A stretch of DNA of 64,000 nucleotides from Anaeramoeba ignava BMAN (lineage: Eukaryota; Protista; Anaeramoebae): the NCBI GenBank assembly GCA_028826165.1, contig JAPDFW010000044.1, positions 310,001 to 374,000 of the forward strand, read 5' to 3'. A model generated the notes under the pieces. That model was not told the DNA's origin. It made no database searches and saw nothing but the letters and a program-made list of their open reading frames with translations. The position numbers were made by a program, and so were the translations under genes. Positions within the stretch are counted from its first letter, which is position 1, and every line of letters begins with the position of its first letter. Of this stretch, positions 2,364-53,230 are shown piece after piece.

Positions 2364-9156
<6,793 letters not shown>

Positions 9157-15803: not shown

Positions 15804-18491
15804 ATGAAAACAAATCTTTTCTTTTACTTCTTGATTATCAATATTTTCTTAATTCAATCAATTCAAAATCAACAAAAATCAATAAAATCATTAATAACTT
15901 CATTAGAAACAGAAACATCAAGATCTTATTCTTCTCTGAATGAAGCTTGGATTTGGAGTTTATTAGACGAATTTTCAGGTTTTTCACCACTTTTTGGATG
16001 GAGTGTTTCAATTTATGAAGATGTTATTGTTATTAGTGATTATTATGCAGCTCAAGTATTTGTTTACAGATATAATGGATCAAATTTGATTCAAGAACAA
16101 ATTTTGAGTGTATTGGTCCCATATTTTGGATGGAGTGTTTCAATTTATGAAGATGTTATTGTTATTGGTGATTATTATATAAATAAAACATTTGTTTACA
16201 GATATAATGGATCAAATTGGAATCAAGAACAAATTTTGAGTGAATCTGCCTCGAAATTTGGATATTCTGTTTCAATTTATGAAGATGTTATTGTTGTTGG
16301 AGCTTATAGTTCAGCTCAAGTATTTGTTTACAGATATAACGGATCGAATTGGAATAAAGAACAAATTTTGAGTGTATTGGTCCCATATTTTGGATGTTCT
16401 GTTTCAATTTATGAAGATGTTATTGTTGTTGGATCTTATGGTGAAAGTCAAGTATTTGTTTACAGATATAGTGGATCGAATTGGATTAAAGAACAAATTT
16501 TGAGTGAATCTTCTTCATATTTTGGATATTCTGTTTCAGTTTATGAAGATGTTATTGCTATTGGATCTTTTGGTGGAAATCAGACATTTGTTTACAGATA
16601 TAGTGGATCAAATTGGAATAAAGAACAAATTTTGAGTGAATCTTCTTCATATTTTGGATATTCTGTTTCAGTTTATAAATATGTTATTGTTATTGGAGCT
16701 TATGATTTAAAACAAGTATTTTTTTACAGATATAATGGATCAAATTGGAATAAAGAACAAATGTTGAGTGAATCTACTTCATATTTTGGATATTCTGTTT
16801 CAATTTATAAGAAATTTATTGTTATTGGAACTGTTGGTGGAAATAAAGCATTTGTTTATGAATTTAATTTCAATACACAAGCTAATATTCTTAATTGTTC
16901 ATCTTTGTTCTCATCATTTGATTGTTATTGGAATAAAATTGAATTTCCTTCACCTTTGGAATATCAAATTAATTATGGATATGATTGGATTGATATTGAT
17001 TCTCCAATTCTTAAAGATGAGAATGTTTATTATCAACAATTTAATTCTTCAATTTATGATAATATTACTGGAAATGAATATTATTCAATTCAAATCAAAG
17101 TTTGTGATTTATCATCAATGGTGTGTGGTGAATCTTCTTCTTTCATTAATTTAACAACAAAAATTGATTCAGTAAAAGATTTCCTATTATCAAATCCTTC
17201 AAATTATTCAATTAATATTAAATGGAACTATCCTAATGTTCGAATTGATGAAGGAATTGCACATGTTGATCATTATAATCTTTCTTATTTCAAACAATTT
17301 GAACCTGATTCAATATCTTCAGTTTCAGTTGATAATTCTTCACTTGATTATTTTTTGAATAATTTGGAATGTAAAACTGATTATAATATTTCAATTTGTG
17401 GATGTAGAACACAAGAATGTGAAGGAGATGATAAAGGAGAAATAATTGAATCATCAGTCTCAATAATATTTGCAGAAGTTACAAACTTAACATGTTCAAT
17501 TTCATATTCATTAGATATTAATTGTAGTTGGAATCAACCAATTAATTGTTCAATTCCATCTTATTATAATTTTAGTTATCAATCAATTTCTCAAAATGAT
17601 TCTGGAAATTATCAATCAACATTATTAAATCAACAATTCACAGCTCAAATTCCAAATCAAGAATATCAAATCAATATATCAGCATGTAATTCAAATGAGA
17701 AATGTGGAGATATTAGAACAACTTCAATTACAACTAATAATTTACCATTAGCTCCAACAATTTATCAAATAAATTCTAAAATTGAAGAAATTGAAATTAA
17801 TTTCACAAAATTAACCAATGCTAATAATTATTTACTTTCAATTGATAATGGAACAAATTGGCAAAAATTTACATCACTTGATTTAAGTGGAAATGAAGTA
17901 ATTGGAATCATAAATGGAATAGCAGGAAATATTGAATATAATATTTCAATTCGAGGATGTTCAGATTTAAATTGTGAAACACTATATTTAGGAGAACCAA
18001 GTTCAATAATTTCAACAAGAGCAAAATTAGGAAATATTACTTCATTAAATTGTTATTCATTAATTAATGGATTTGTTTGTACTTGGGATGGGTTAAATCT
18101 ATCAACAGGATTAAAAGGATATTCATTTAATTACAACTCAAAATCAATTTGTTTAACAAATTCATTATCACCTTATTATTCAATTTCAGGATTAAATGAA
18201 GAATATTATTATGAAATTTCAGTTTATTCATCAGCTGATCCAAATTGTTTATTTAATGAATATTCAGGAATTAAATCAACAATATCATTTGAATCTTCAT
18301 TTCAATGTGGTCCATATCAAGGAAATGATAATTCAACAAACACAACATCAATAGTTATTGGAATCCTTGTTCCAATTATTGCTATTTTAACAATTATTTT
18401 TGGAATTATTTTATTTAAGAAGAAAAGAAAAAAACAAATTATTAAAGAAATTATAAAAGAAAAAGAACTTCAAACTGATCTAAATTTTTAA
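15804..18491 (+). CDS. Type I membrane protein: signal peptide, 7 FG-GAP-like beta-propeller repeats, FN3-like domains, TM helix, short basic tail
   Basis: ~44-aa repeats FGxSVSIYEDVIVxG...FVYRYxGSNWxxEQILS; FN3-like W/Y/YxISI patterns; TM IVIGILVPIIAILTIIFGIILF followed by KKKRKK. Confidence 0.85.
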   Translation: MKTNLFFYFLIINIFLIQSIQNQQKSIKSLITSLETETSRSYSSLNEAWIWSLLDEFSGFSPLFGWSVSIYEDVIVISDYYAAQVFVYRYNGSNLIQEQILSVLVPYFGWSVSIYEDVIVIGDYYINKTFVYRYNGSNWNQEQILSESASKFGYSVSIYEDVIVVGAYSSAQVFVYRYNGSNWNKEQILSVLVPYFGCSVSIYEDVIVVGSYGESQVFVYRYSGSNWIKEQILSESSSYFGYSVSVYEDVIAIGSFGGNQTFVYRYSGSNWNKEQILSESSSYFGYSVSVYKYVIVIGAYDLKQVFFYRYNGSNWNKEQMLSESTSYFGYSVSIYKKFIVIGTVGGNKAFVYEFNFNTQANILNCSSLFSSFDCYWNKIEFPSPLEYQINYGYDWIDIDSPILKDENVYYQQFNSSIYDNITGNEYYSIQIKVCDLSSMVCGESSSFINLTTKIDSVKDFLLSNPSNYSINIKWNYPNVRIDEGIAHVDHYNLSYFKQFEPDSISSVSVDNSSLDYFLNNLECKTDYNISICGCRTQECEGDDKGEIIESSVSIIFAEVTNLTCSISYSLDINCSWNQPINCSIPSYYNFSYQSISQNDSGNYQSTLLNQQFTAQIPNQEYQINISACNSNEKCGDIRTTSITTNNLPLAPTIYQINSKIEEIEINFTKLTNANNYLLSIDNGTNWQKFTSLDLSGNEVIGIINGIAGNIEYNISIRGCSDLNCETLYLGEPSSIISTRAKLGNITSLNCYSLINGFVCTWDGLNLSTGLKGYSFNYNSKSICLTNSLSPYYSISGLNEEYYYEISVYSSADPNCLFNEYSGIKSTISFESSFQCGPYQGNDNSTNTTSIVIGILVPIIAILTIIFGIILFKKKRKKQIIKEIIKEKELQTDLNF

Positions 18492-19553: not shown

Positions 19554-22241
19554 ATGAAAACAAATCTTTTCTTTTACTTCTTGATTATCAATATTTTCTT
19601 AATTCAATCAATTCAAAATCAACAAAAATCAATAAAATCATTAATAACTTCATTAGAAACAGAAACATCAAGATCTTATTCTTCTCTGAATGAAGCTTGG
19701 CTTTGGAGTTTATTAGACGAATTTTCAGGTTTAGGACTTTTTGGATGGAGTGTTTCAATTTATGAAGATGTTATTGTTATTGGAAATTTGGGTGGAAATC
19801 AAGTATTTGTTTACAGATATAATGGATCAAATTTGATTCAAGAACAAATTTTGAGTGAATCTTCTTCATATTTTGGATATTCTGTTTCAATTTATGAAGA
19901 TGTTATTGTTATTGGAGCTTATGATACAAATAAAACATTTGTTTACAGATATAGTGGATCAAATTGGAATAAAGAACAAATTTTGAGTGAATTGGTCCCA
20001 TATTTTGGATGTTCTGTTTCAATTTATGAAGATGTTATTGTTGTTGGAGCTTATGGTGGAAAACAAGCATTTGTTTACAGATATAACGGATCGAATTGGA
20101 ATAAAGAACAAATTTTGAGTGTATTGGTTTCATATTTTGGATATTCTGTTTCAATTTATGAAGATGTTATTGTTGTTGGAGCTTATAGTTCAGCTCAAGT
20201 ATTTGTTTACAGATATAACGGATCGAATTGGAATCAAGAACAAATTTTGAGTGAATTGGTTTCATATTTTGGATGTTCTGTTTCAATTTATGAAGATGTT
20301 ATTGCTATTGGAGCTTATGGTGGAAAACAAGCATTTGTTTACAGATATAGTGGATCAAATTGGAATAAAGAACAAATGTTGAGTGAATCTTCTTCATATT
20401 TTGGATATTCTGTTTCAGTTTATAAATATGTTATTGTTATTGGAGCTTATGATTTAAATCAAACATTTGTTTACAGATATAGTGGATCAAATTGGAATAA
20501 AGAACAAATGTTGAGTGAATCTACTTCATATTTTGGATATTCTGTTTCAATTTATAAGAAATTTATTGTTATTGGAACTTTTGGTGGAAATAAAGCATTT
20601 GTTTATGAATTTAATTTCAATACACAAGCTAATATTCTTAATTGTTCATCTTTGTTCTCATCATTTGATTGTTATTGGAATAAAATTGAATTTCCTTCAC
20701 CTTTGGAATATCAAATTAATTATGGATATGATTGGATTGATATTGATTCTCCAATTCTTAAAGATGAGAATGTTTATTATCAACAATTTAATTCTTCAAT
20801 TTATGATAATATTACTGGAAATGAATATTATTCAATTCAAATCAAAGTTTGTGATTTATCATCAATGGTGTGTGGTGAATCTTCTTCTTTCATTAATTTA
20901 ACAACAAAAATTGATTCAGTAAAAGATTTCCTATTATCAAATCCTTCAAATTATTCAATTAATATTAAATGGAACTATCCTAATGTTCGAATTGATGAAG
21001 GAATTGCACATGTTGATCATTATAATCTTTCTTATTTCAAACAATTTGAACCTGATTCAATATCTTCAATTTCAGTTGATAATTCTTCGCTTGATTGTTT
21101 TTTGAATAATTTGGAATGTAAAACTGATTATAATATTTCAATTTGTGGATGTAGAACACAAGAATGTGAAGGAGATGATAAAGGAGAAATAATTGAATCA
21201 TCAATCTCAATAATATTTGCAGAAGTTACAAACTTAACATGTTCAATTTCATATTCATTAGATATTAATTGTAGTTGGAATCAACCAATTAATTGTTCAA
21301 TTCCATCTTATTATAATTTTAGTTATCAATCAATTTCTCAAAATGATTCTGGAAATTATCAATCAACATTATCAAATCAACAATTCACAGCTCAAATTCC
21401 AAATCAAGAATATCAAATCAATATATCAGCATGTAATTCAAATGAGAAATGTGGAGATATTAGAACAACTTCAATTACAACTAATAATTTACCATTAGCT
21501 CCAACAATTTATCAAATAAATTCTAAAATTGAAGAAATTGAAATTAATTTCACAAAATTAATCAATGCTAATAATTATTTACTTTCAATTGATAATGGAA
21601 CAAATTGGCAAAAATTTACATCACTTGATTTAAGTGGAAATGAAGTAATTGGAATCATAAATGGAATAGCAGGAAATATTGAATATAATATTTCAATTCG
21701 AGGATGTTCAGATTTAAATTGTGAAACACTATATTTAGGAGAACCAAGTTCAATAATTTCAACAAGATTAAAATTAGGAAATATTACTTCATTAAATTGT
21801 TATTCATTAATTAATGGATTTGTTTGTACTTGGGATATATTAAATCTATCAACAGGATTAAAAGGATATTCATTTAATTACAACTCAACATCAATTTGTT
21901 TAACAAATTCATTATCACCTTATTATTCAATTTCAGGATTAAATGAAGAATATTATTATGAAATTTCAGTTTATTCATCAGCTGATCCAAATTGTTTATT
22001 TAATGAATATTCAGGAATTAAATCAACAATATCATTTACATCATCTTCATTTCAATGTGAACCATATCAAGGAAATGATAATTCAACAAACACAACATCA
22101 ATAGTTATTGGAATCCTTGTTCCAATTATTGCTATTTTAACAATTATTTTTGGAATTATTTTATTTAAGAAGAAAAGAAAAAAACAAATTATTAAAGAAA
22201 TTATAAAAGAAAAAGAACTTCAAACTGATCTAAATTTTTAA
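19554..22241 (+). CDS. Tandem paralog of the FG-GAP propeller/FN3 membrane protein
   Basis: 895 aa, near-identical to 15804..18491 outside the propeller loops. Confidence 0.85.
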   Translation: MKTNLFFYFLIINIFLIQSIQNQQKSIKSLITSLETETSRSYSSLNEAWLWSLLDEFSGLGLFGWSVSIYEDVIVIGNLGGNQVFVYRYNGSNLIQEQILSESSSYFGYSVSIYEDVIVIGAYDTNKTFVYRYSGSNWNKEQILSELVPYFGCSVSIYEDVIVVGAYGGKQAFVYRYNGSNWNKEQILSVLVSYFGYSVSIYEDVIVVGAYSSAQVFVYRYNGSNWNQEQILSELVSYFGCSVSIYEDVIAIGAYGGKQAFVYRYSGSNWNKEQMLSESSSYFGYSVSVYKYVIVIGAYDLNQTFVYRYSGSNWNKEQMLSESTSYFGYSVSIYKKFIVIGTFGGNKAFVYEFNFNTQANILNCSSLFSSFDCYWNKIEFPSPLEYQINYGYDWIDIDSPILKDENVYYQQFNSSIYDNITGNEYYSIQIKVCDLSSMVCGESSSFINLTTKIDSVKDFLLSNPSNYSINIKWNYPNVRIDEGIAHVDHYNLSYFKQFEPDSISSISVDNSSLDCFLNNLECKTDYNISICGCRTQECEGDDKGEIIESSISIIFAEVTNLTCSISYSLDINCSWNQPINCSIPSYYNFSYQSISQNDSGNYQSTLSNQQFTAQIPNQEYQINISACNSNEKCGDIRTTSITTNNLPLAPTIYQINSKIEEIEINFTKLINANNYLLSIDNGTNWQKFTSLDLSGNEVIGIINGIAGNIEYNISIRGCSDLNCETLYLGEPSSIISTRLKLGNITSLNCYSLINGFVCTWDILNLSTGLKGYSFNYNSTSICLTNSLSPYYSISGLNEEYYYEISVYSSADPNCLFNEYSGIKSTISFTSSSFQCEPYQGNDNSTNTTSIVIGILVPIIAILTIIFGIILFKKKRKKQIIKEIIKEKELQTDLNF

Positions 22242-24861: not shown

Positions 24862-27800
24862 TTAATCTTCTTTCTTTTGAGCTTTAGATTTCTTAGGTAA
24901 TTGAGAAGCTTCAATTGGGACTTTAATTAAACGGAAAACATATCTCAAAGGAATAGAAGCAGCACCAATAGAGATTGAGATAATCCACTCATCAAGAGAA
25001 AGAGGGGTTGTTGAGAAGAATTTCCCACCGAAAGTAACGACAAGGAATTGAACAGCAACAATGAAGATCAAGATGCCAATAAAGATGGCGTTTTTGAACA
25101 ATCCTTGGAAAATATTCAATTCATCATGAATCTTTCTTGAATTGAGTTCGTTGAAAACTTGGCATAAAACAAACGAGTTAAAGAGAATGGTGTATAAATG
25201 GACTTGTTGTTCGGGGATTGAGATGTCATAGTGGAAGAAAGAACCGCCGAAATAGAGGATGAAGAACAAGACAGAAAGCTGATATGCTCCCTGAGTGAGG
25301 ATGTTGCGGATCATTTTGTTAGATAATAACGAATCCGTTTTCGCATATGGTTTACGATTCAAAAGATCGCGTGTCGGGGGTTCTGTTCCAAGCGCAAGTG
25401 CGGCTAATGTGTCCATGATAAGATTCACCCAAAGCATCTGTACTGCCTTGAGTGGTGAGCCTTTTTTCGTGATTGCGGAGACAAACGCTAAAACAAGTGC
25501 GACAAAATTGACTGTTAATTGAAATTGCAAGAATTTTCGGATGTTGTCATACACACATCGTCCCCATAAAACAGCGTTCACAATGGACTTGAAATTATCA
25601 TCCAAAATAACAATTGCACTTGCTTCTTTGGCCACATCTGTGCCTGTGATTCCCATACTAAGTCCGACATTTGCTTCCTTAAGTGCTGGCGCATCATTGG
25701 TTCCATCTCCGGTAACGGATACAATCTCTCCCATTTCTTTCAAGGCTTTGACTAAGATTAATTTATCGTTTGGTGACGATCTTGCAATCACTTGAAGTTC
25801 GGGAACAAGTTTTTTGCGCTCTTCATCGCTTAAGTTTCTCCATTGATATCCTTCAATTGCTTTTCCATCAGTCAAAATTCCGCATTCTCTTGCAATATGA
25901 CTTGCTGTTTCAATATTATCACCTGTTACCATTCTAACAGTAATTCCTGCGTTTTGGCATTCTTTCACTGCTCTTGGAACTTCTTTTCTCACTGGATCCT
26001 TGATTCCAACAATTGCAATGCAAATCAAATCCTTTTCGAATTGATCGGGTTCGTCGAATGTTTCTTTTCCTGTTTTTGTAAAGTCTTTATAAGCTAATGT
26101 TAATGTTCTTAATCCTGAACTTGCCATTTTTTGGATCAATCCTTTGATCTCATTTTCCTTGCTTTCGTTTAATTTTTGAGCTCCTCCTTCTTTATCCATA
26201 AAATGACTGCATTTTCCAAATACAATTTCTGATGCTCCTTTCATGTGCATTCGGTAATTTCCGTTTTTTTTAACGATTGTTGACATTCTTTTTCTTGCAC
26301 TGCTGAATGTGAATGTTTTCACAATCTTGTCTTCATTTTCTTTTTGGAATTTAATGTATGGATATTTCAATTTCATTAAGAGATTGACAAGTGCGCATTC
26401 TGTTTGTGATCCAACTGCTTGTTTTCCATCCCAGAATGCTTTTGAGTTTGTTGCGACTCCTTCTCCGAAAATTTCCATAATTTTATCATCAAATTTTTCA
26501 GGAATTTCTTTGTAGTAATTATCGAGGAAGTATCCAGCAACAACTGTCATTTGATTTTCTGTAAGAGTACCTGTTTTATCACTGCAGATGCCTTAATAAT
26601 TTTTATAAAATTAAAATAAATTAAAATAAATTAAAATAAATTAAAATAAATTAAAATAAATTAAAATAAATTAAAATAAATTAAAATAAATTAAAATAAA
26701 TTAAAATAAATTAAAATAAATTAAAATAAATTTCAAATAAATAAATTAAAATAAATTAAAATAAATTAAAATAAATTAAAATAAATTTAAATAAATTTCA
26801 AATAAATAAATTAAAATAAATTAAAATAAATTAAAATAAATAAAAATAAATTTAAATAAATTAAAATAAATTCAAATAAATTTAAATAAATTAAAATAAA
26901 TTAAAATAAATTAATTAAAATAAATTAAAATAAATTAAAATAAATTTAAATAAATTAAAATAAATTTAAATAAATTTTATTTCTTATTTCTTCCTTACTT
27001 GTTACATTTCCCATTGTTTCACATGATTCAAGTCTTCGAACAAGATTCATATCTTTCATCATTTTCTTCATTGAATAAGCTAAAGAAATTGTAACAGCAA
27101 GTGGAAGTCCTTCAGGAACAGCAACAACAATAATGGTAATTGCAATAATTAAAAAGTCAACAACTTCAACAAAACTTTCAAAAGAAAATCCATTTTCCAT
27201 TGCCACTAAAAAAATTTATTTTAATTTAATTTTTAATTTATTTTATAAATTAATTTTTAATTTAATTTAATTTAATTTAATTTTTAATTTAATTTTTAAT
27301 TTAATTTTTAATTTAATTTAATTTAATTTAATTTTTAATTTAATTTAATTTTATAATTTAATTTTTAATTTTATAATTTAATTTAATTTTTAATTTTTAA
27401 TTTAATTTAATTTTTAATTTAATTTTTAATTTAATTTATAATTTAATTTAATTTAATTTAATTTAATAATTTAATTTTTAATTTAATTTAATAATTTAAT
27501 TAAAATTTACTGTTCTTCAAAACCCATTGAATAACAAGAACCAATAAAGTTAATCCAGCAGAAACTGTTCCAATAATTCCAATTAAATTGGCTGTATCTG
27601 TAAGTTTTAATTGAAGTGGTGTTGGATCAGGTGGTTTTGTGAAATTTTTTCTTGCATGTCCCCATTGACTTTTGATTCCAACTCCAGTAATAACCATTCT
27701 ACCTTCTCCAGTCATAACTTTTGTTCCTCCATATAAAATATAATTTTCATTTTTATTCTTGTGGATTGCTTTTGGTTCTCCAGTTAATTCTGATTCATTA

Positions 27801-29377
27801 ACCTCAAGTTCTTAATTTTAAATTTAAAAAAAAGAAATGAAAATTTTTAAATTTTAATTATTTTAATTAATTTAATTTAATTTTTTACCATTTGCAAAAA
27901 TAACTAATCCATCAGCAGGAATTTTAGCACCAGCTGAAAGAAGAACAATATCTCCAACATTAATTTCATGAATTGAAACATTAACAGCTGCAGAAAGACC
28001 TGGTTCAGTTTCACGGAAAACCTAAATGAAAAAAAAAAAGAAAATAAAATATTTGAAAATATTTGGAAATAATTTTAAATTTATATTTAATTTTTTATAT
28101 TTTTAATTTAAATTTAATTATTTAATTAATTGTCAATATTTGAAAAATTTAAAATTTAAATGAAAATTTTTAATTTTTAATATTTTGAAAATAATTTAAT
28201 TTAATTTTTAAATTTATATTTTATTTTTATATTTTTAATTTAATTTTTAATTAATTGTCAATACTTGAAAATATTTGAAAATAATTTAAATTTAATTATT
28301 TAATTAATTGTCAATAATTGAAAATATTTATATTTTTAATTTAAATTTACCTAATTGTCAATATTTGAAAATAATTTTAAATTTAATTTTTAATTAATTG
28401 TCAATATTTGTTAATTAATTGTCAATATTTGAAAATAATTGAAAATAATTTTAATTTAATTATTTAATTAATTGTCAATATTTGGAAATATTTGGAAATA
28501 ATTTTAAATTTATATTTTATTTTTAATTTTTATTTTTAAATTTATTTTTATTTTTATATTTTTAATTTAATTATTTAATTAATTGCCAATATTTGAAAAT
28601 AATTTTAAATTTAATTTTTTAATTAATTGTCAATATTTGAAAATATTTGAAAATATTTTTAAATTAAATTATTTAATTAATTGTCAATATTTGAAAATAT
28701 TTGAAAATAAATTTAATTATTTAATTAATTGTCAATATTTGAAAATAAATTTAAATTTTATATTTTAATTTAAATTTAATTATTTAATTAATTGTCAATA
28801 TTTGGAAATAATTGAAAATAATTTTTATTTAATTATTTTAATTTTTATTTTTAATTTAATTTTTTATTTTTTTTATATTTTTTATATTTTTTTATTTTAT
28901 TTTTTTATTTACAGGAACTAAAACATCATCTTTAACTTTATTCAAAGCTCTAAATTGAAGTTCTTTTTGATAATCATTAATAGCAGTAACTAAACAAACA
29001 ATAACAACAGCAGCAAGAATAGCAGTTCCTTCAATCCAACCAGTTCTTGGATCTTCAACAGTAACACCCAAAACCAAAGAAACAACAGCAGAAATCATTA
29101 AGATAATTAAAGTTGAATCTTGTAAAGCCTCAAAAACAAGAGTGAAAAAGCTTTTTGTCGGTTGTTCTGGAAATTGATTTTTGCCATATTTTTCTCTTCT
29201 TGTTTTGAATCCTGATTGTGTTTCTGAAAGTCTTAATCCTACTTTTGGATCTACACATACTTTCTTCATAACTCCTTCTATTCCTTCTTGATCTTCTAAT
29301 CTTTTTTTTAATGTTGGTTCACCAATTTCAAGTAAACCAAACAATTCATCTTGATTGATTTCAAAATTTAATGCCAT
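24862..29377 (-). CDS. PMCA: P-type IIB (PMCA-like) Ca2+-transporting ATPase; exons 29377-28913, 28021-27889, 27810-27511, 27205-26999, 26591-24862
   Basis: [13 protein letters not shown]; S|[10 protein letters not shown] phosphorylation motif joined across an intron; ESELTGE; KGASE; MVTGDN; [13 protein letters not shown]; [15 protein letters not shown]. Confidence 0.95.
26605..26975. repeat. Intronic 10-bp tandem repeat (TAAATTAAAA)n
   Basis: Direct inspection, inside a PMCA intron. Confidence 0.9.
28100..28815. repeat. Intronic minisatellite with core TTAATTAATTGTCAATATTTGAAAAT
   Basis: The core recurs more than 10 times at irregular spacing in PMCA intron 1. Confidence 0.85.
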
Positions 29378-39539: not shown

Positions 39540-40300
39540 AAGCATAAAAAACAAAAATAAATTAAATATTTTATTATTAAAATATTTTACATAAAAATAT
39601 AAAAAATAAAAATAGATTTAATTTAATATTTAATTTATAAATTAATTTAAAAATATAATTTAATATTCAATTTTATTATTAAAATAATAATTTATTGTTT
39701 TAGATTTAAATATTTTATTATTTAAATATTTAACATATAAATATAAAAAATAAGAATAGATTTAATTTAATATTTAATTTATAAATTAATTTAAAAATAT
39801 AATTTAATATTTAATTTTATTATTAAAATAATATTTTATTGTTTTAGATTTAAATATTTTATTATTTAAATATTTTACATATAAATATAAAAATAAGAAT
39901 AGATTTAATTTAATATTTGATTTATAAATTAATTTAGAAATATAATTTAATATTTAATTTTATTATTAAAATAATAATTTATTGTTTTAGATTTAAATAT
40001 TTTATTATTTAAATATTTAACATAAAAATATAAAAAATAAAAATAGATTTAATTTAATTAAATAATTTTAAATAATTTAAAAATATAATTTAATATTTAA
40101 TTTTATTATTAAAATAATATTTTACAATTTTTAGATTTAAATATATTTTATTTTTAAATATTTTACATATAAATTTTAAGAATTTTCAATTTAATATTTC
40201 TTTTAAAAATATTTTAAATTAAAATTAAATTGTTTAAATTTATGTTTAAAATATTAATTTATTGTTTTAGATTTAAATATTTTGTTATTTAAAAATATTT
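39540..40300 (+). repeat. ~144-bp AT-rich tandem repeat array A (4-5 copies)
   Basis: aatagatttaa anchors at 39611, 39755, 39898, 40042; marker ttattgttttagatttaaat. Confidence 0.9.
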
Positions 40301-40596
40301 TCAATTTATTTCTTTATTAAAAAAATTTTTAAGTTTTATAATTGATTTGTTTCACTAATATTTTATATTTTATAAAATATTTTACAATTAATAATAATTA
40401 ATATATATTTTTAATTTTTATATATTTTTGATTTTCTTTTTTTTCAATTTAATCTTCTTTTTAATAATATTTTTAAATTAAAATTAAATTGTTTAAATTT
40501 GGATTTGTTTCTTATTTATTGATTTGAAGAATTTAAATTGATTGAAAGTAAATGAAAATTGAATTGAATTTTGAAAAAAAAATGAAAAAAAAGTTT

Positions 40597-43500
40597 TTAA
40601 ATGAAATAAGTCTCAAGTTCATCAACAACCCATTCATCATAAGAACCAGCTAAATAACTTTTAGCTTCATTTGTTCCATCGTGAATTCCATTAGGTAGAT
40701 TATAAGTAAAACCAAAATCTGAAAGAGCACTTTGTAATTTAGAATCTATCCAAATATCACCTATAAATATTTTAATAAAGATAAATAATTAATTTTAATA
40801 ATAATTAATAATAATTTAATTTAAAATTAATTTTATTTTAAATTGAAATAATAATATTATTTATTATATTAATATTTTGGATTATTTATTAATTTAATTT
40901 TAATTATAATAATAAATATTTATTAAATATAAATTATTTACCATCTATTTTAATAAAAATAAATAATTAATTTTAATAATAATTAATAATAATTTAATTT
41001 AAAATTAATTTTATTTTTAAATTGAAATAATAATATTATTTATTATATTAATATTTTTGTATTATTTATTAATTTAATTTTAATTATAATAATAATTATT
41101 TATTAAATATAAATTATTTACAAACTATTTTAATAAAGATAAAAAAATTAATTTTAATAATAATTAATTTTAATAATAATTTAATTTAAAATTAATTTTA
41201 TTTTAAATTGAAATAATAATATTATTTATTATATTAATATTTTAGATTATTTATTAATTTAATTTTAATTATAATAATAATTATTTATTAAATATATAAA
41301 TTATTTACTCTCTATTTTAATAAAGATAAATAATTAATTTTAATAATAATTAATAATAATTTAATTTAAAAATTAATTTTATTTTAAATTGAAATAATAA
41401 TAATATTATTTATTATATTAATATTTTGGATTATTTATTAATTTAATTTTAATTATAATAATAAATATTTATTAAATATAATTTATTTACTCCCTCTATT
41501 TTTAATAAATATAAATGATTAATTTTAATAATAATTAATAATAATTTAATTTAAAAATTAATTTTGATTTTTAAATTGAAATAATAATAATATTATTTAT
41601 TATATTAATATTTTGGATTATTTATTAATTTAATTTTAATTATAATAATAAATATTTATTAAATATAAATTATTTACCATCTATTTTTAATAAATATAAA
41701 TGATTAATTTTAATAATAATTAATAATAATTTAATTAAAAATTAATTTTTTTTTTATTTTAAAAATTTCCTAAAAAATAATAATATTATTTATTATATTA
41801 ATATTTAGATTATTTATTAATTTAATTTTAATTATAATAATAATTATTTATTAAATATAATTTATTTACATTCTATTTTAATAAAGATAAATAATTAATT
41901 TTAATAATAATTTAATTTAAAATTAATTTTATTTTAAATTGAAATAATAATATTATTTATTATATTAATATTTTAGATTATTTATTAATTTAATTTTAAT
42001 TATAATAATAAATATTTATTAAATATAATTTATTTACGTTCTATTTTAAATAAAGATAAATAATTAATTTTAATAATAATTAATAATAATTTAATTTAAA
42101 ATTAATTTTATTTTAAATTAAAAAATAATAATATTATTTATTATATTAATATTTTTGGGGGGATTATTTATTAATTTAATTTTAATTATAATAATAAATA
42201 TTTATTAAATATAAATTATTTACATTCTATTTTAATAAAGATAAATAATTAATTTTAATAATAATTAATAATAATTTAATTTAAAATTAATTTTATTTTA
42301 AATTGAAATAATAATATTATTTATTATATTAATATTTTGTATTATTTATTATATTAATATTTTGTATTATTTATTAATTTAATTTTAATTATAATAATAA
42401 ATATTTATTAAATATAATTTATTTTACATTCTATTTTAATAAAGATAAATAATTAATTTTAATAATAATTAATAATAATTTAATTTAAAATTAATTTTAT
42501 TTTAAATTGAAATAATAATAATTATTTATTATATTAATATTTTTGTATTATTTATTAATTTAATTTTTAATTATAATAATAAATATTTATTAAATATAAT
42601 TTATTTACAAAGCTATTTTAATAAAGATAAAAATTAATTTTAATAATAATTAATAATTTAATAATTTAATTTAAAATTAATTTTATTTTTAAATTAAAAT
42701 AATGATATTATTTATTATATTAATATTTTAGATTATTTATTAATTTAATTTTAATTATAATAATAAATATTTATTAAATATAAATTATTTACAAACTATT
42801 TTAATAAATATAAATAATTAATTTTTAAATTATAATTAATAATTTAATTTAATTTAATTTAAAAATTAATTTTATTTTTAAATTAAAATAATAATATTAT
42901 TTATTATATTAATATTTTGTATTATTTATTAATTTAATTTTAATTATAATAATAAATATTTATTAAATATAATTTATTTACTCTCTATTTTAATAAAGAT
43001 AAATAATTAATTTTAATAATAATTAATAATAATTTAATTTAAAATTTAATTTTATTTTAAATTGAAATAATAATATTATTTATTATATTAATATTTTGTA
43101 TTATTTATTAATTTAATTTTAATTATATTAATAAATATTTATTAAATATAAATTATTTACCAACTATTTTAATAAAATAAATAATTAATTTTAATTATAA
43201 TTAATAATAATTTAATTTAAAATTTAATTTTATTTTAAATTGAAATAATAATATTATTTATTATATTAATATTTTGTATTATTTATTAATTTAATTTTAA
43301 TTATAATAATAAATATTTATTAAATATAAATTATTTACCAACTATTTTAATAAAATAAAATAATTAATTTTAATAATAATTAATAATAATTTAATTTAAA
43401 AATTAATTTTATTTTAAATTGAAATAATAATATTATTTATTATATTAATATTTTGTATTATTTATTAATTTAATTTTAATTATAAATAATAAATATTTAT

Positions 43501-45333
43501 TAAATAAAAATTATTTACTAGCTATTTTAATAAAGTTAAATAATTAATTTTAATAATAATTAATAATAATTTAATTTTAAAATTAATTTTATTTTAAATT
43601 AAAAAAATAATAATATTATTTATTATATATTAATATTTTGGATTATTTATTAAATTTAATTTTAATTATAAATAATAAATATTTATTAAATATAAATTAT
43701 TTACTAGCTATTTTAATAAAAATAAAAATTAATTTTAATAATAATTAATAATAATTTAATTTAAAATTTAATTTTATTTTAAATTAAAATAATAATATTA
43801 TTTATTATATTAATATTTTGGATTATTTATTAATTTAATTTTAATTATAATAACAAATATTTATTAAATATAATTTATTTACTATCTATTTTAATAAAGA
43901 TAAATAATTAATTTTAATAATAATTAATAATAATTTATTTTAAAATTTAATTTTATTTTAAATTGAAATAATAATAATAATAATAAATATTTATTAAATA
44001 TAAATTATTTATATTTACATCCTCCAAAAATTGGACCAAAATATGAATCATAATAAATTGCATATTGTTCCATTCCTTTTTTAATTGTAAACTTCTCTGG
44101 TTTTCTATCTCCTTTATCATTTCTTAATGAAAAAATAAATGCATTTGAATCAATAATATTGCCATTACTATCATTTTTATCCTCTTCTCTCCATTTTGAT
44201 TTATCTTTTGTCCATCCAACTTGAGTAAATCCTCCAAAAATAAAATTATCTTTTGTTTTGATAATAACTAATGTTTTTCCTTTCCTATCAACTGCTTTAT
44301 GCCAATTTTGAGAATCAAATCCATCTCTTTTTGCTGAAAATCCTTTTTTCATTTTATAAAAAAAATCATTATCATTTATCCATTCTTGTAATTTCTTAAC
44401 ATATTCAATATCTTTAATAATTTCTGAATCTGATAGAAATCTTGATTTAAAAATGAATGAATTTTGATTTTCTTTTTGAATTAATTCAATGAATTCAATT
44501 AATTTTTCTTTATCATTTTGAAGTAGTTGTAATTGAATTAATTTTTGTGAAATTTGGTTTGGAATTATATCTTCTTTCAAAGTATCTTCAAGTTCTTGGT
44601 TTGTGAAATCAATAAATCCGATTTTACCAACAATATTTGAAATTTGATTTTGTAATTTTTCTTTTTCTTCTTTTTCAAGTTTTTGATTTTCTTTTTCTTG
44701 ATTAATATTTGATTTATGTTTTCCCCATTTTATTATTGATTGAAACATTTCAAATTCATTTGGTGGAATATAATCATTTGATAAAATTGAATTTAAATGA
44801 TTTTCTTCAAGTTCAAGAAAAAAAGGAGTTTTGATAAATTCTTCAAAATTTTCAAAAATAAATTTATAAGAAGAATCAAATAATTCATTTAAGTTCATTG
44901 ATTCAGATAATTTAAGAACATCAACAACAGTTTCAAATTGTAAATTCTTTTTGATAAATTTTGAAGAAATTTCAGTTAATTCATCAATTAAATATTTTGA
45001 TGAAAAAAATAAAATTCCAACTGCATTTTCTAAATTAATTTCAATTTTTCCTGAATAAAAATAATTCAAAATTGAAGATAGAATTGAACTTGAAACATCT
45101 TTTAGAATCATTTTATTTTCTTGATATTCTTTCATTTTTGAATTGAAAAGAGATTTAAAATATTGACTTCTTGAAGAAAGAATTGATTTATGAGTTTTAA
45201 ATGAAGTTTTGTTTTGTTCACAAATTATTTCAAAATCAAAATAACTTTCTTCTTCTTTTTCATTTTGGTTTTGATTTTGAAATAAATTTTTTAAATCATT
45301 TGAAAGTTTTTTTAAATTTGAATAAGTTTTCAT
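40597..45333 (-). CDS. BTB-BACK-TLDc protein; exon 1 45333-44019, micro-exon array, last exon 40760-40597
   Basis: BTB (FKTHKSILSSRSQYFKSLF), BACK and TLDc (FSAKRDGF, GKTLVIIKT, IFGGFT, AFIFSL, GPIFGG). The last exon DIWIDSKLQSALSDFGFTYNLPNG...YLAGSYDEWVVDELETYFI* completes the TLDc in phase 1. Confidence 0.9.
40761..44018 (-). repeat. Array of 18 ~180-bp GT-AG intron units separated by 17 variable micro-exons
   Basis: Each junction on the - strand reads ttattaaaatAG-NNN-GTaaataa. NNN in order: ata cta cta ttg ttg aga ttt cttt aat aat aac aat atg aggga aga ttt atg. Confidence 0.85.
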
Positions 45334-45439: not shown

Positions 45440-46430
45440 GAAAATAGATTTAATTTAATATTTAAATTTATAAATCAATTTAAAAATATAATTTAATATT
45501 TAATTCCATTATTAAAAAAATAATTTAATGTTTTAGATTTAAATATTTTATTATTTAAATATTTAACATATAAATATAAAAAATGAAAATAGTTTTAATT
45601 TAATATTTAATTTATAAATTAATTTAAAAATATAATTTAATATTTAATTTTATTATTAAAATAATAATTTAATGTTTTAGATTTAAATATTTTATTATTT
45701 AAATATTTAACATATAAATATAAAAATAAGAATAGATTTAATTTAATATTTAATTTATAAATTAATTTAAAAATATAATTTAATATTTAATTTTTATGTT
45801 TAAAATAATAATTTAATGTTTTAGATTTAAATATTTTATTATTTAAATATTTTAAACATATAAATATAAAAATAAGAACAGATTTAATTTAATATTTAAT
45901 TTATAAATTAATTTAAAAATATAATTTATTATTTAATTTTATGTTTAAAATAATAATTTAATTGTTTTAGATTTAAATTATTTTATTATTTAAATATTTA
46001 ACATATAAATATAAAAATAAAATAGTTTTAATTTAATATTTAAATTTATAAATTAATTTAAAAATATAATTTAATATTTAATTCCATTATTAAAATAATA
46101 ATTTATTGTTTTAGATTTAAATATTTTATTATTTAAATATTTAACATATAAAATATAAAAAATGAAAATAGATTTAATTTAATATTTAATTTATAAATTA
46201 ATTTAAAAATATAATTTAATATTTAATTTTATTATTAAAATAATAATTTAATGTTTTAGATTTAAATATTTTATTATTTAAATATTTAACATAAAAATAT
46301 AAAAATGAAAATAGATTTAATTTAATATTTAATTTATAAATTAATTTAAAAATATAATTTAATATTTAATTTTATGTTTAAAATAATAATTTATTGTTTT
46401 ATGATTTAAATATTTTATTATTTAAAAATA
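45440..46430 (+). repeat. ~144-bp tandem repeat array B (~7 copies) between the divergent BTB-TLDc genes
   Basis: Same unit and orientation as 39540-40300. Confidence 0.9.
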
Positions 46431-46820: not shown

Positions 46821-49800
46821 ATGGATAATAATAATAACAACCAAATTGAAAATGCAAACCAAAATCAAAATGAAAATGAAATGAAAAATTTAGAAAAAAA
46901 AGTAACAAAAAATTTAATTAAAGATTATTCAAACCTTTTAAATGAAAATTCATTTAAAGATTTTTCAATTTTTGTTGAGAATAAATCAAATCATTTTGAA
47001 ATTAAAGTTCATAAATCAATTTTATCTTCAAGATCTCCTTTTTTTAATGAGTTTTTAAAAGAACAAAAACATCCTAATTCTATTTCTTTAAATCAATTTA
47101 ATAAAAAAGAAATGGAATCAATTTTGAGTTATATTTATTATGGAAATATTTCTTTTGAGAATCAAGAAAATCTTATTCAATTATTAGAAATTTCAATTTA
47201 TTTTAAATTAAATTTATTGAAAGAAATTATTCAAAAAAAAATTTCAAATTCAATTAATTATTCAAATTTTTTCCAATTTTTATTCCAAAATCGAAATTTA
47301 AATTCAAATGAAATTGAAATAAAATGTTTTGAATTAATAAATCAAAATTTTTCCCAAATTCAGAATAATGAGAATTTATTCAATTTAACTAAAGAAGAAA
47401 TTATCAAATTTATTCAATTTAAACAAGAAAAAAAAGAAATTTTTCAATTTGATTTTTTTCAATTTTTAAATGAATGGATTAAAAAAAGACTTAAATCATT
47501 AAGATTAAAGAAATCTGAACACCAAAAGAATGAAAAGAAAAGATTATTTCATTCTTTTTTTTCATTATTTGATAAAGATTCAATTTCAAAACAAGATTTT
47601 GATAAATTAAAACAATTTGATTTTTTTCTTCCAAATTCTTTTTTAATTAATTTTGAAAGAACTATTTTTCAAATTAAAGATCAAAAAAAAGAAACAAAAA
47701 TCAAAGAAAAAGATGAGGAAATTCAAAATCTTAAATTATCATTTGAGAAAAAAATTGAAAAAGGGGAACAAATACAAGAAATTCACAATCAAAAGGAACA
47801 GAAATTATTGGAGATTTTACCTCAATTTTCAGATTCAGAAATTATTAAAGATATTGAATATGTTAAGAGATTACAAGAATGGATAAATGATAATGATTTT
47901 TTTTCTAAAATGAAAAAAGGATTTTCAGCAAAAAGAGATGGATTTGATTGTGATAAATGGCATTCGATTTGTGATAATAAAGGAAAAACATTAGTTATTA
48001 TCAAAACAAAAGATAATTTTATTTTTGGAGGTTTTACTCAAGTTGGATGGACAAATGATAAATCAAAATGGAGTGAAAAAGATAGAAATGATGATTATGG
48101 ATGTATTCCAGATTCAAATGCATTTATTTTTTCATTAAGAAATGATAAAGGAGATAGAAAACCAGAAAAGTTTATAATTCAAAAAGGAAAAGAACAATAT
48201 GCAATTTTTTATGATTTAAATTATGGTCCAATTTTTGGAGGAGGTAAATATAAATAATTTATATTTAATAAATATTTATTATTATAATTAAAATTAAATT
48301 AATAAATAATCCAAAATATTAATATAATTAATAATATTATTATTTCAATTTAAAATAAAATTAATTTTAAATTAAATTATTATTAATTATTATTAAAATT
48401 AATTATTTATCTTTATTAAAATAGATTGTAAATAATTTATATTTAATAAATATTTATTATTATAATTAAAATTAAATTAATAAATAATCCAAAATATAAA
48501 TATAATCAATAATATTATTATTTCAATTTAAAATAAAATTAATTTTAAATTATTAAATTAAATTATTATTAATTATTATTAAATTAAATTATTTATATTT
48601 ATTAAAATAGATTGTAAATAATTTATATTTAATAAATATTTATTATTATAATTTATATTTATTAAATAAATATTTATTTATTTAATTATAATTAAAATTA
48701 AAATTAATAAATAAATAATCCAAAAATATAAATATAATAAATAATATTATTATTTCAATTTAAAATAAAATTAATTTTAAAATTAAATTATTATTAATTA
48801 TTATTAAAATTAATTATTTATCTTTATTAAAATAGATGGTAAATAATTTATATATTATTATAATTAAATTTAAATTAATAAATAATCCAAAATATTAATA
48901 TAATAAATAATATTATTATTTCAATTTAAAATAAAATTAATTTTAAATTAAATTATTATTAATTATTATTAAAATTAATTATTTATATTTATTAAAATAG
49001 ATTGTAAATAATTTATATTTAATAAATAATTTATTATTATAATTAAAAATTAAATTAATAAATAATCCAAAAATATAAATATAATCAATAATATTATTAT
49101 TTCAATTTAAAATAAAATTAATTTTTAAATTAAATTATTATTAATTATTATTAAAATTAATTATTTATATTTATTAAAATAGATGGTAAATAATTTATAT
49201 TTAATAAATATTTATTATTATAATTAAAATTAAATTAATAAATAATCCAAAATATTAATATAATAAATAATATTATTATTTCAATTTAAAATAAAATTAA
49301 TTTTAAATTAAATTATTATTAATTATTATTAAAATTAATTATTTATTTTTATTAAAATAGATAGTAAATAATTTATATTTAATAAATAATTTATTATTAT
49401 AATTAAAATTAAATTAATAAATAATACAAAATATTAATATAATAAATAATATTATTATTTTAATTTAAAATAAAATTAATTTTAAATTAAATTATTATTA
49501 ATTATTATTAAAATTAATTATTTATCTTTATTAAAATAGGTTGTAAATAATTTATATTTAATAAATATTTATTATTATAATTAAAATTAAATTAATAAAT
49601 AATACAAAATATTAATATAATAAATAATATTATTATTTCAATTTAAAATAAAATTAATATTAAATTAAATTATTATTAATTATTATTAAAATTAATTATT
49701 TATATTTATTAAAATAGTGAGTAAATAATTTATATTTAATAAATATTTATTATTATAATTAAATTTAAATTAATAAATAATACAAAATATTAATATAATA

Positions 49801-51648
49801 AATAATATTATTATTTCAATTTAAAATAAAATTAATATTAAATTAAATTATTATTAATTATTATTAAAATTAATTATTTATCTTTATTAAAATAGGTTGT
49901 AAATAAATTTATATTTAATAAATATTTATTATTATAATTAAAATTAAATTAATAAATAATACAAAAATATTAATATAATAAATAATAATATTATTTCAAT
50001 TTAAAATAAAATTAATTTTAAAATAAATTATTATTAATTATTATTAAAATTAATTATTTATCTTTATTAAAATAGATGGTAAATAATTTATATTATTATA
50101 ATTAAAATTAAATTAATAAATAATCTAAAATATTAATATAATAAATAATATTATTATTTCAATTTAAAAATAAAATTAATTTTAAATTAAATTATTATTA
50201 ATTATTATTAATATTAATTATTTATCTTTTATTAAAAATAGATGGTAAATAATTTATATTTAATAAATATTTATTATTATAATTAAAATTAAATTAATAA
50301 ATAATACAAAAATATAAATATAATCAATAATAATATTATTTCAATTTAAAATAAAATTAATTTTAAATTAAATTATTATTAATTATTATTAAAATTAATT
50401 ATTTATCTTTATTAAAATAGGTTGTAAATAATTTATGATTTAATAAATATTTATTATTATAATTAAAATTAAATTAATAAATAATCCAAAAATATAAATA
50501 TAATAAATAATATTATTATTTCAATTTAAAAATAAAATTAATTTTAAATTAAATTATTATTAAAATTAATTATTTATCTTTATTAAAATAGATGGTAAAA
50601 TAATTTATATTTAACAAATATTTATTATTATAATTAAAATTAAATTAATAAATAATCCAAAATATAAATATAATAAATGATATTATTATTTCAATTTAAA
50701 ATAAAATTAATTTTAAATTAAATTATTATTAATTATTATTAATATTAATTATTTATCTTTATTAAAATAGATAGTAAATAATTTATATTTAATAAATATT
50801 TATTATTATAATTAAAATTAAATTAATAAATAATCCAAAATATTAATATAATAAATAATATTATTATTTCAATTTAAAATTAAATTAATAAATATTTATT
50901 ATTATAATTAATATTAAAATTAATAAATAATCTAAAATATTAATATAATAAATAATTTATTATTTAATAAATATTTATTATTATAATTAAAATTAAATTA
51001 ATAAATAATCCAAAATATAAATATAATAAATAATATTATTATTTCAATTTAAAAATAAAATTAAATTTTAAATTAAATTATTATTAATTATTATTAAAAT
51101 TATTTATTTATCTTTATTAAAATAGTTCGTAAATAATTTATATTTAATAAATATTTACTATTATAATTAAAATTAAATTAATAAATAATCCAAAATATTA
51201 ATATAATAAATAATATTATTATTTCAATTTAAAATAAAATTAATTTTAAATTAAATTATTATTAATTATTATTAAAATTAATTATTTATCTTTATTAAAA
51301 TAGTTGGTAAATAATTTATATTTAATAAATATTTATTATAATTAAAATTAAATTAATAAATAATCTAAAATATTAATATAATAAATAATATTATTATTTC
51401 AATTTAAAATAAAATTAATTTTAAATTAAATTATTATTAATTATTATTAAAATTAATTATTTATCTTTATTAAAATATTTATAGGTGATATTGTGTTAGA
51501 TTCTATATTACAATCTGGTCATTCAGATTTTGGTCAGAGCTATAATCTATCTAATGGAATTAAAAAAGGAACAAATGAAGCTGAAAGTTATTTAGCTGGT
51601 TCTTATAATAAATGGGTTGTTGATGAACTTGAGACTTATTTCATTTAA
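46821..51648 (+). CDS. BTB-coiled coil-TLDc protein; exon 1 46821-48243, micro-exon array, last exon 51485-51648
   Basis: BTB (IKVHKSILSSRSPFF) and TLDc motifs. The last exon GDIVLDSILQSGHSDFGQSYNLSNG...YLAGSYNKWVVDELETYFI* is in phase. Confidence 0.9.
48244..51484 (+). repeat. Array of 17 ~180-bp GT-AG intron units separated by 16 variable 3-nt micro-exons
   Basis: aaaatAG-NNN-GTaaata with NNN at 48425 att, 48611 att, 48836 atg, 49001 att, 49183 atg, 49361 ata, 49540 gtt, 49718 tga, 49896 gtt, 50076 atg, 50242 atg, 50421 gtt, 50592 atg, 50771 ata, 51126 ttc, 51304 ttg. Confidence 0.9.
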
Positions 51649-51939
51649 AAACTTTTTTTTATTTTTTTTTCAAAATTCAATTCAATTTTCATTTACTTTC
51701 AATCAATTTAAATTCTTCAAATCAATAAATAAGAAACAAATCTAATTTTAAATAATTTAATTTTAATTTAAAAATATTATTAAAAAGAAGATTAATTTGA
51801 AAAAAATGAAAATCAAAAATATATAAACATTGAAAATATATATTAATTATTATTAATTGTAAAATATTTTATAAAATATAAAATAAGAAACAAATCAATT
51901 ATAATTTATTATTAAAAAATTATTTAATAAAGAAATAAA

Positions 51940-53230
51940 TTGAAAATATTTTTAAATAACAAAATATTTAAATCTAAAACAATAAATTATTATTTTAATA
52001 ATAAAATTAAATATTAAATTATATTTTTAAATTAATTTATAAATTAAATATTAAATTAAATCTATTCTTATTTTTTATATTTTTATGTTAAATATTTAAA
52101 TAATAAAATATTTAAATCTAAAACAATAAATTATTATTTCAAGCATAAAATTAAATATTAAATTATATTTTTAAATTAATTTATTAAATTAAATATTAAA
52201 TTAAATCTATTTTTATATTTTTATATTTATATGTTAAATATTTAAATAATAAAATATTTAAATCTAAAACATTAAATTATTATTTTAAACATAAAATTAA
52301 ATATTAAATTATATTTTCAAATTGATTTATTAAATTAAATAATAAATTAAAACTTTTTCATTTTTATATTTATATGTTAAATATTTAAATAATAAAAATA
52401 TTTAAATCTAAAACAATAAATTATTATTTTAAACATAAAATTAAATATTAAATTATATTTTTAAATAAATTTATAAATTAAATAATAAATTAAAACTATT
52501 TTCATTTTTTATATTTATATGTTAAATATTTAAATAATAAAATATTTAAATCTAAAACATTAAATTATTATTTCAAACATAAAATTAAATATTAAATTAT
52601 ATTTTTAAATTAATTTATTAAATTAAATAATAAATTAAAACTATTCTTATTTTTTATATTTTATATGTTAAATATTTAAATAATAAAATATTTAAATCTA
52701 AAACAATAAATTATTATTTTTAATAATAAAATTAAATATTAAATTATATTTTTAAATTAATTTATAAATTAAATATTAAATTAAATCTGTTCTTATTTTT
52801 TATATTTTTATGTTAAATATTTGAATAATAAAATATTTAAATCTAAAACATTAAATTATTATTTTAATAATAAAATTAAATATTAAATTATATTTTTTAA
52901 ATTGATTTATTAATTAAATATTAAATTAAAACTATTTTCATTTTTTATATTTATATGTTAAATATTTAAATAATAAAATATTTAAATATAAAACATTAAA
53001 TTATTATTTTAATAATAAAATTAAATATTAAATTATATTTTTAAATTAATTTATAAATTAAATATTAAATTAAATCTATTCTTATTTTTTATATTTTTAT
53101 GTTAAATATTTAAATAATAAAATAATTAAATCTAAAACATTAAATTATTATTTTAATAATAAAATTAAATATTAAATTATATTTTTAAATTAATTTATAA
53201 ATTGAATAATAAATTAAAACTATTTTTATA
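51940..53230 (-). repeat. ~144-bp tandem repeat array C (~9 copies), inverted relative to A and B
   Basis: Marker atttaaatctaaaacaataa is the reverse complement of the array A marker. Confidence 0.9.

Follow-up and report, generated by a model that had tools for sequence, protein, structure and literature searches.

Candidate single-codon exons in a variable TLDc loop of Anaeramoeba ignava: a chain joined in full, or in combinations?

Can a spliceosomal exon be reduced to three nucleotides and repeated in a chain of sixteen and, if so, are the members of such a chain always joined in full, or in varying combinations? The question is raised by one gene in a 64,000-nucleotide window of the Anaeramoeba ignava BMAN genome (the window, G000:C35:310001-374000, being part of an assembly of 42.8 Mb in 147 contigs), which encodes a protein with a BTB and a TLDc domain and in which the TLDc coding sequence is interrupted by a tandem series of cloned introns with three-base candidate exons, here called triplets, between them (array 1; Table 1). 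The answer favoured here, with a probability of about 0.52, is that the triplets would be genuine three-nucleotide spliceosomal exons, included in a leaky or combinatorial manner on top of a diversification that takes place in the DNA itself. At the DNA level, arrays of this kind share one architecture and a constrained junction length, their triplets are hypervariable, and both unit number and triplets turn over.

Layout of the array and variability of its triplets

The open reading frame (ORF) of the gene opens at 46821, and its first exon encodes the BTB domain and most of the TLDc domain (54.8 bits for Pfam TLD, against a cut-off of 24.5), in line with the layout proposed in the first-pass annotation; the public gene model is the 528-residue protein P0091. 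That annotation had placed the array between a phase-1 donor (48243/48244) and a phase-1 acceptor (51484/51485), both of which are borne out in the sequence, the donor GT running from 48244 and the terminal AG lying at 51483-51484. All 16 variable triplets are present at AG-NNN-GT junctions, and in the order claimed; 31 junctions of this pattern are seen in the window against 0.38 expected, 15 of them in a second array. The introns of array 1 measure 162-183 nt, with two exceptions: one is of 222 nt, and another, which has lost an internal junction, is of 352 nt. The description of the repeat as almost pure A/T outside its junctions is accurate for G, since 44 of 46 G lie in junctions, but not for C, of which there are 65 that are not so confined; the genome as a whole is 80.65% A+T, with 32,108 annotated introns of modal length 76 nt (PMC11550330 and its supplement).

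The first donor is of a founder type (GTAAATATAA, in this position in 25 of 27 genes), whereas internal donors are mostly GTAAATAATT. In the paralog L047 the founder intron is still single, and is 97% identical to an array unit. A special strong terminal acceptor was considered and found unneeded, because the first donor and last acceptor of an array match the two ends of the founder intron of L047.

Table 1. Features of the two array genes (positions in the window)
Feature	Position	Strand	Remarks
Exon 1, BTB-TLDc gene	46821..48243	+	ends in phase 1 after GPIFGG; Pfam BTB E=1.5e-15, TLD E=1.5e-14
Array 1	48244..51484	+	17 cloned GT-AG introns (162-352 nt) with 16 three-base candidate exons between them
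First intron	48244..48424	+	founder-type donor
16 triplets (7 distinct)	48425..51306	+	ATT ATT ATG ATT ATG ATA GTT TGA GTT ATG ATG GTT ATG ATA TTC TTG; starting at 48425, 48611, 48836, 49001, 49183, 49361, 49540, 49718, 49896, 50076, 50242, 50421, 50592, 50771, 51126, 51304
Last intron	51307..51484	+	founder-type acceptor, 6 nt longer than internal ones; same in single-intron paralog L047
Last exon	51485..51648	+	final 53 residues of TLDc and stop codon
Second array, inverted paralog	40761..44018	-	18 introns, 17 junctions; triplet set differs from array 1
Paralog exon 1, BTB-BACK-TLDc	44019..45333	-	public model P0087 = KAJ5078882.1
Paralog last exon	40597..40760	-	

Joining all the triplets of array 1 gives the stop-free translation that had been claimed, and every possible subset (65,536 of 65,536) is likewise in frame and free of stops, the total being 16,236 distinct peptides. 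With the junctions in phase 1, each codon is split over neighbouring triplets, as had also been pointed out. Skipping of all triplets yields the predicted translation but not the canonical loop that had been supposed: only two residues are left between FG and D, one below the three usual in TLDc (58 of 80 motifs, in more distant homologues), so that in this gene it is a single included triplet that gives the canonical length.

The first-pass annotation had allowed that the triplets might vary no more than other positions of the repeat, but the excess found is large. In array 1 there are 0.023 substitutions per site in the introns, as against 0.56, 0.14 and 0.69 at triplet positions 1, 2 and 3. 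Among the 26 arrays that were read, out of some 40-45 (267 triplets, 1-30 units in each, together with one single-intron gene), the ratio of triplet to intron variation is 5- to 45-fold in all 16 of the larger ones. Units paired as reciprocal nearest neighbours (n=43) show a difference of 1.65% in the flanks, as against 29.5% in the triplets (Fisher p=5e-34, a value that is only nominal because unit pairs are not independent). The most variable bases are those at triplet positions 1 and 3 (codon positions 2 and 1), and the least variable is the middle, wobble base; constraint from splice signals would predict the reverse, because it would act on the bases adjoining AG and GT. The G+C content of the triplets is 27%, against 4% in the introns.

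Of the 267 triplets, 234 (88%) have T as their middle base, and this is no requirement of splicing, because in an ankyrin-repeat gene with phase-0 three-nucleotide exons (see below) only 1 of 27 has it. Since codons ending in T are never stops, 21 of the 26 arrays are stop-free under any join; the claim that any subset is free of stops thus holds well beyond array 1, but fails in the array of the neighbouring paralog. At the wobble position there are 70 T and 3 A, where codon usage would lead one to expect 32 A. The residues encoded by in-order joining (n=293) include D 66, Y 49, F 26, S 23, G 16 and V 16, and the suggested likeness to the Y/D/S/G-rich loops of antibody complementarity-determining region 3 holds for composition only (D and Y make up 39% of junction codons). 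These indirect tests, together with the fixed 3-nt length, the ankyrin exons and two public models described below, support a reading of the triplets as genuine coding micro-exons subject to diversifying selection.

Spread through the TLDc family, and the position of the loop

A genome search for further arrays, which the first-pass annotation had called for, found the same layout across the family and on many contigs. There are about 600 TLDc candidates in the genome, and some 40-45 paralogs carry the intron (as marked genome-wide by about 35 exact and 10 near-exact copies of the terminal acceptor); in those that were read the unit number ranges from 0 to 30, and the arrays and the single intron are all at the same TLDc loop and all in phase 1. 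Counted genome-wide with the exact junction motif (n=375), the gap between AG and GT has a length of 3 nt at 360 junctions, of 4 nt at 13 and of 2 nt at two, and no gap of 0, 1 or 5-9 nt was found. All 15 exceptions lie within short homopolymer runs, as expected of long-read slips, and homopolymer frameshifts are also present in some neighbouring exons; a looser junction pattern gave as many matches genome-wide as its control. Arrays on contig C1 retain AG-NNN-GT even though drift has brought their introns to lengths of 60-230 nt. Spaced repeats that nearly match the terminal acceptor motif, but without its final AG, occur at G000:C1:821671-822023, C88:60831-62758 and C24:581855-582783, and are possibly decayed arrays or unrelated satellites.

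Units are found on separate contigs that have near-identical flanks and yet different triplets. Sister arrays share the triplet in 11 of 14 collinear units, and swaps of more than one base, for instance from ATG to GGG, are also present in collinear units; taken together, these observations point to gene conversion. Intronless paralogs were considered as possible fossils of spliced mRNAs, an idea that finds no support: their loops use GGA, AAA and other codons that do not end in T, and the tree is mostly unresolved.

The second array of the window lies in an inverted paralog, in which alone of the two genes there is a Pfam BACK match. One of its junctions has 4 nt, and another has either 5 nt or a shifted acceptor. 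Six of its units (four AAT/AAC and two AGA) form stops after the T-ending exon 1, which may be the mark either of a decaying gene or of incomplete inclusion of units. The two genes are part of a stretch of about 5 kb that is duplicated in inverted orientation (89% identity; window ~39560-44430 and 47830-52700) and takes in TLDc, array and 3' flank; the BTB N-terminus attached to it differs between the copies. On either side of both array genes, and also between them (~45480-46420), lies a 144-bp A/T satellite; as a source of the intron unit it was rejected, with an alignment score of ~105 against 321.

Three-nucleotide exons also occur in an ankyrin-repeat gene (L006:2960-5740, minus strand; G000:C2), which has 27 of them in phase 0 among unrelated introns of 54-91 nt, in runs of 3, 10, 10 and 4 at inter-repeat hairpins, with a RING-like/kinase ORF upstream. 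An AG lies exactly 3 nt upstream of 26 of its 33 donors (shuffle mean 1.2, maximum 6), and none of the 27 triplets is a stop. These exons are not explained by any satellite. At the end of G000:C1, six three-nucleotide exons (CCA CCT AAA GAA GAA CCA) follow a BTB/low-complexity region at L005:3260-4080, and an ankyrin-like exon with two more triplets lies at L005:4480-4790.

As to the position of the loop, the AlphaFold model of a paralog, P0060 (pLDDT 91.6), is predicted to have the TLDc fold, matching NCOA7, mEAK-7 and Oxr1 (Foldseek E 4e-8; VIA Z 15-20, rmsd ~2 A), and in it the loop appears as a variable coil between two strands (94-98 and 110-113) and forms the block of lowest confidence. 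Loops in other paralogs are of 1 to ~12 residues, with a mode of 3. TLDc proteins such as OXR1, NCOA7, mEAK-7 and TBC1D24 share this common fold and protein-binding module; unlike them, the A. ignava family has its ~600 candidates, a fusion with BTB(-BACK) and a hypervariable loop. Counting from an aligned anchor residue, 329, with the 30-residue spacing found in the array gene, residue 367 of mEAK-7 is presumably at or next to the equivalent loop (a position obtained by estimate rather than by residue-level alignment). Tyr367 of the mEAK-7 TLDc domain contacts V-ATPase subunit E1 (PMC9263379), and its estimated position suggests, by analogy, that the variable loop may be on a binding face; on the reading favoured here, the candidate single-codon exons would sit in a probable binding loop. 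From its domain content the product would be a Cullin3 ubiquitin-ligase adaptor of variable target specificity. A GC-richer intronless TLDc gene, of base composition unlike that of the paralogs, is found at L006:7260-8001 (minus strand).

Constitutive chain or combinatorial inclusion

On the reading favoured here, the arrays go back to one founder intron at the GPxFG(G)-loop of TLDc, which was tandemly duplicated as a cassette of intron plus codon-length exon, and recombination goes on altering the number and content of the units, all of which the DNA shows; recombination and gene conversion would also keep the introns alike within and between paralogs, and selection would keep the amino-acid-changing bases diverse. 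The short introns would be removed one by one, by intron definition, and if each is defined and removed in turn, then the triplets enter the mRNA. Given near-identical internal splice sites and 16 equivalent units, mixed in-frame loops would be hard to avoid: with 5% skipping per exon the computed share of full-length product for 16 units is 44%, and with 10% it is 19%. Phase 1 and the middle T together would leave nearly all skip variants in frame and free of stops. A single gene would then give rise to a whole population of loops, in which every novel junction brings novel residues. From the biology of BTB/Cullin3 and TLDc proteins, such a loop could set the target specificity of a ubiquitin-ligase adaptor, a plausible use being surveillance of foreign (prey, symbiont or viral) proteins. 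That combinatorial splicing of single-codon exons actually furnishes this single-celled eukaryote with a large repertoire of intracellular recognition loops is put forward only tentatively, at somewhat short of even odds.

There are several points that weigh against combinatorial inclusion. The stop-proof property is real, but the middle T may have been inherited and not favoured by selection, descent from the founder unit being also sufficient to explain the wobble bias; triplets with stop-prone starts (13 of 267) show no clear depletion. Protein database searches, made with single exons, an intronless paralog or database proteins, and cluster look-ups gave no transcript-derived copy of the array family proteins, and 21 public models of array genes, P0091 among them, join exon 1 directly to the last exon, although these models are weak evidence either way because gene finders cannot represent three-nucleotide exons. 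Outside the second array, no stop-prone triplet comes after a T in the order of the genome (P=0.047 by permutation, post hoc). Exons are usually skipped only rarely in organisms with short introns, which, with this avoidance of in-order stops, favours a chain that is always spliced in full.

Such a constitutive chain is the main rival, and fits the sequence about equally well, although on balance it is considered rather unlikely. Every intact triplet would be joined in genomic order to give a single long loop (with 16 added residues in the case of array 1), and diversity would reside in the DNA only, the cloned introns acting as recombination spacers for the insertion, deletion and swapping of single codons across ~40 paralogs. 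Besides the avoidance of T just mentioned, it is supported by in-order translations that are stop-free in 25 of the 26 arrays, by an excess of identical neighbouring triplets over shuffling (46 against 36.7, P=0.028), by the first linker of the ankyrin gene in L006, which has exactly the three triplets required for the usual repeat spacing, and by the annotated intron mode of 76 nt, which suggests intron definition (PMC11550330 supplement). The only two public models that enter an array, P0115 and P0092, use its first triplet: they end in YCK and FSK followed by a stop, i.e. exon 1 plus the first triplet (ATT and TTA respectively) and then a reading into the next intron, which suggests that the first internal acceptor had read support, although it could also have been an ab initio choice. 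In the second array, on the other hand, in-order joining meets stops (AAT after a unit that ends in T), although the exons of that gene are otherwise intact; the longest loops would be of 30 residues, as compared with a maximum of ~12 in other paralogs; faithful inclusion of 16-30 identical units would require less than 1-2% skipping of each; and the 15 junctions that are not of 3 nt, if real rather than long-read errors, would break many of the ~45 genes. The stops of the second array under full inclusion, and the very long loops otherwise implied, lean towards partial inclusion.

It is much less probable that the array is an intronic minisatellite, removed as a single 3.2-kb intron, directly or recursively, so that the triplets never reach the mRNA. 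The 21 models that skip an entire array and the occurrence of decayed junctions would agree with this, as would L047, the existence of which shows a short loop to be viable. What it leaves unexplained is why the 3-nt length and intact AG and GT persist in old arrays with drifted introns, the 5- to 45-fold excess of variation at amino-acid-changing positions together with the retention of G+C, the ankyrin exons, and the two public models in which exon 1 is spliced to that first internal acceptor; as for the recursive form, recursive sites are zero-nucleotide AG/GT junctions (PMC13149111), none of which was found genome-wide with the exact motif. A choice of one or a few units out of N, in the manner of Dscam, is more improbable again. 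Mostly one triplet would be included, giving 7 dipeptide variants in the array 1 gene and restoring there the canonical three-residue loop, but the units are redundant (7 distinct out of 16), cloned introns offer no unit-specific handle, no selector or docking structure was seen (no search being aimed at one), and inclusion of a single unit gives stops for ten units in all (six in the second array and one in each of four others). An artefact of assembly or base-calling scarcely merits belief: the assembly of this anaerobic amoeba is indeed nanopore-based and Pilon-polished (PMC11550330), and some neighbouring exons do contain homopolymer frameshifts, but the sharing of triplets by collinear units of sister arrays, the gene-specific triplet repertoires and the presence of the pattern on many contigs, and between unrelated introns as well, all speak against it. 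The public annotation is probably wrong both for the array genes and for the ankyrin genes with three-nucleotide exons.

Relation to known systems, and significance

Perhaps the nearest parallels are the micro-exon genes (MEGs) of Schistosoma, with runs of 10-20 very short exons, mostly of 3n nucleotides, and several protein variants per gene (PMC10526429). Array 1 resembles them in its many short 3n exons (16 units, with 360 of 375 junctions genome-wide being of 3 nt) and in that the exons are missed by automatic annotation (PMC10526429). MEG exons, however, are mostly of 15 nt (6-81 nt, or 3-81 nt by the abstract), with introns of 0.1-5 kb and secreted products that have signal peptides (PMC10526429), whereas in array 1 every candidate exon is of 3 nt and in phase 1, with split codons and cloned introns, and all serve one loop of a cytosolic folded domain. 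The array adds at most 16 of ~544 residues to a protein with an N/Q/E-rich N-terminus followed by BTB, in which no signal peptide is seen by eye. In the brown-algal families ROCO and NB-ARC-TPR, which are expanded and are proposed immune receptors, tandem intron-exon cassettes in the binding domain recombine within as well as between genes, are under diversifying selection and undergo alternative splicing (PMC3341825, PMC11378527). Traces of recombination and diversifying selection are likewise present here (0-30 units, 5- to 45-fold variation), but the algal exon is a whole 72-nt structural repeat, as against one codon length, and no inverted intronic units were seen in the A. ignava arrays, unlike in the algal receptors.

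With Dscam1 there is a general likeness, in that tandemly duplicated alternative exons diversify a recognition surface. The alternatives in Dscam1 have the size of half an Ig domain or of a whole one, and docking/selector RNA pairing sees to it that strictly one is taken from each cluster; the analogy drawn in the first-pass annotation finds no support as regards one-of-N choice, and exons of 3 nt are far from domain-sized. In diversity-generating retroelements and NNT codon libraries the first two codon positions vary while the third is a fixed pyrimidine, so that no stop can arise. The arrays resemble these solely in their coding logic: neither a reverse transcriptase nor a template repeat is implicated. 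The junctions differ too from recursive splice sites (zero-nucleotide AG/GT in very long introns), having no 0- or 1-nt gap. Isolated microexons of 1-3 nt are spliced in animals and fungi (PMC13149111), with 27 three-nucleotide exons in 26 Coprinopsis genes (PMC12230235), i.e. about one per gene, against chains of up to 30 in A. ignava. In common with BTB Cullin3 adaptors, the array gene combines BTB with a candidate substrate-binding domain. Neither chains of three-nucleotide exons, nor cassettes of cloned intron plus codon, nor the assembly of codons in split phase were found described in the literature, coverage of which was incomplete, and the genome paper with its supplement (PMC11550330) makes no mention of the arrays. 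They may be seen as an extreme form of exon-cassette diversification, which would be categorically new if combinatorial splicing holds.

Some further observations may be recorded. Another cassette-type array, at L007:2650-4600 (G000:C11), has Armadillo-like repeats, each in its own exon of ~125 nt, with near-identical alternating introns. The window also contains two tandem genes for 895-residue membrane proteins (15804-18491 and 19554-22241) with fibronectin-III-like regions and 44-residue repeats (132-bp period) that differ at few positions, these genes being interleaved with RCC1-BTB-like ones; an ATA microsatellite of 2.9 kb almost devoid of G/C (2788-5666); and a P-type Ca-ATPase-like gene (26550-29377, minus strand) with introns full of short A/T tandem repeats.

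Chains of 16-30 consecutive three-nucleotide exons would bring exon size to its lower limit, and offer a natural test of the spliceosome at adjacent splice sites. Either of the leading mechanisms, recombination of cloned introns or combinatorial skipping, would be an undescribed means of diversifying a loop one codon at a time, and in a free-living, symbiont-bearing amoeba this bears on whether protists may have anticipatory, immune-like receptor repertoires. The deposited A. ignava BMAN RNA-seq (BioProject PRJNA634776) makes the question directly testable. If inclusion is combinatorial, some 16,000 loops could come from the array 1 gene, and ~12,600 loops of four units or fewer from the 26 arrays read; this would amount to a counterpart, achieved by splicing, of the junctional diversity of antibodies, carried by ubiquitin-ligase adaptors and with stops excluded by design.

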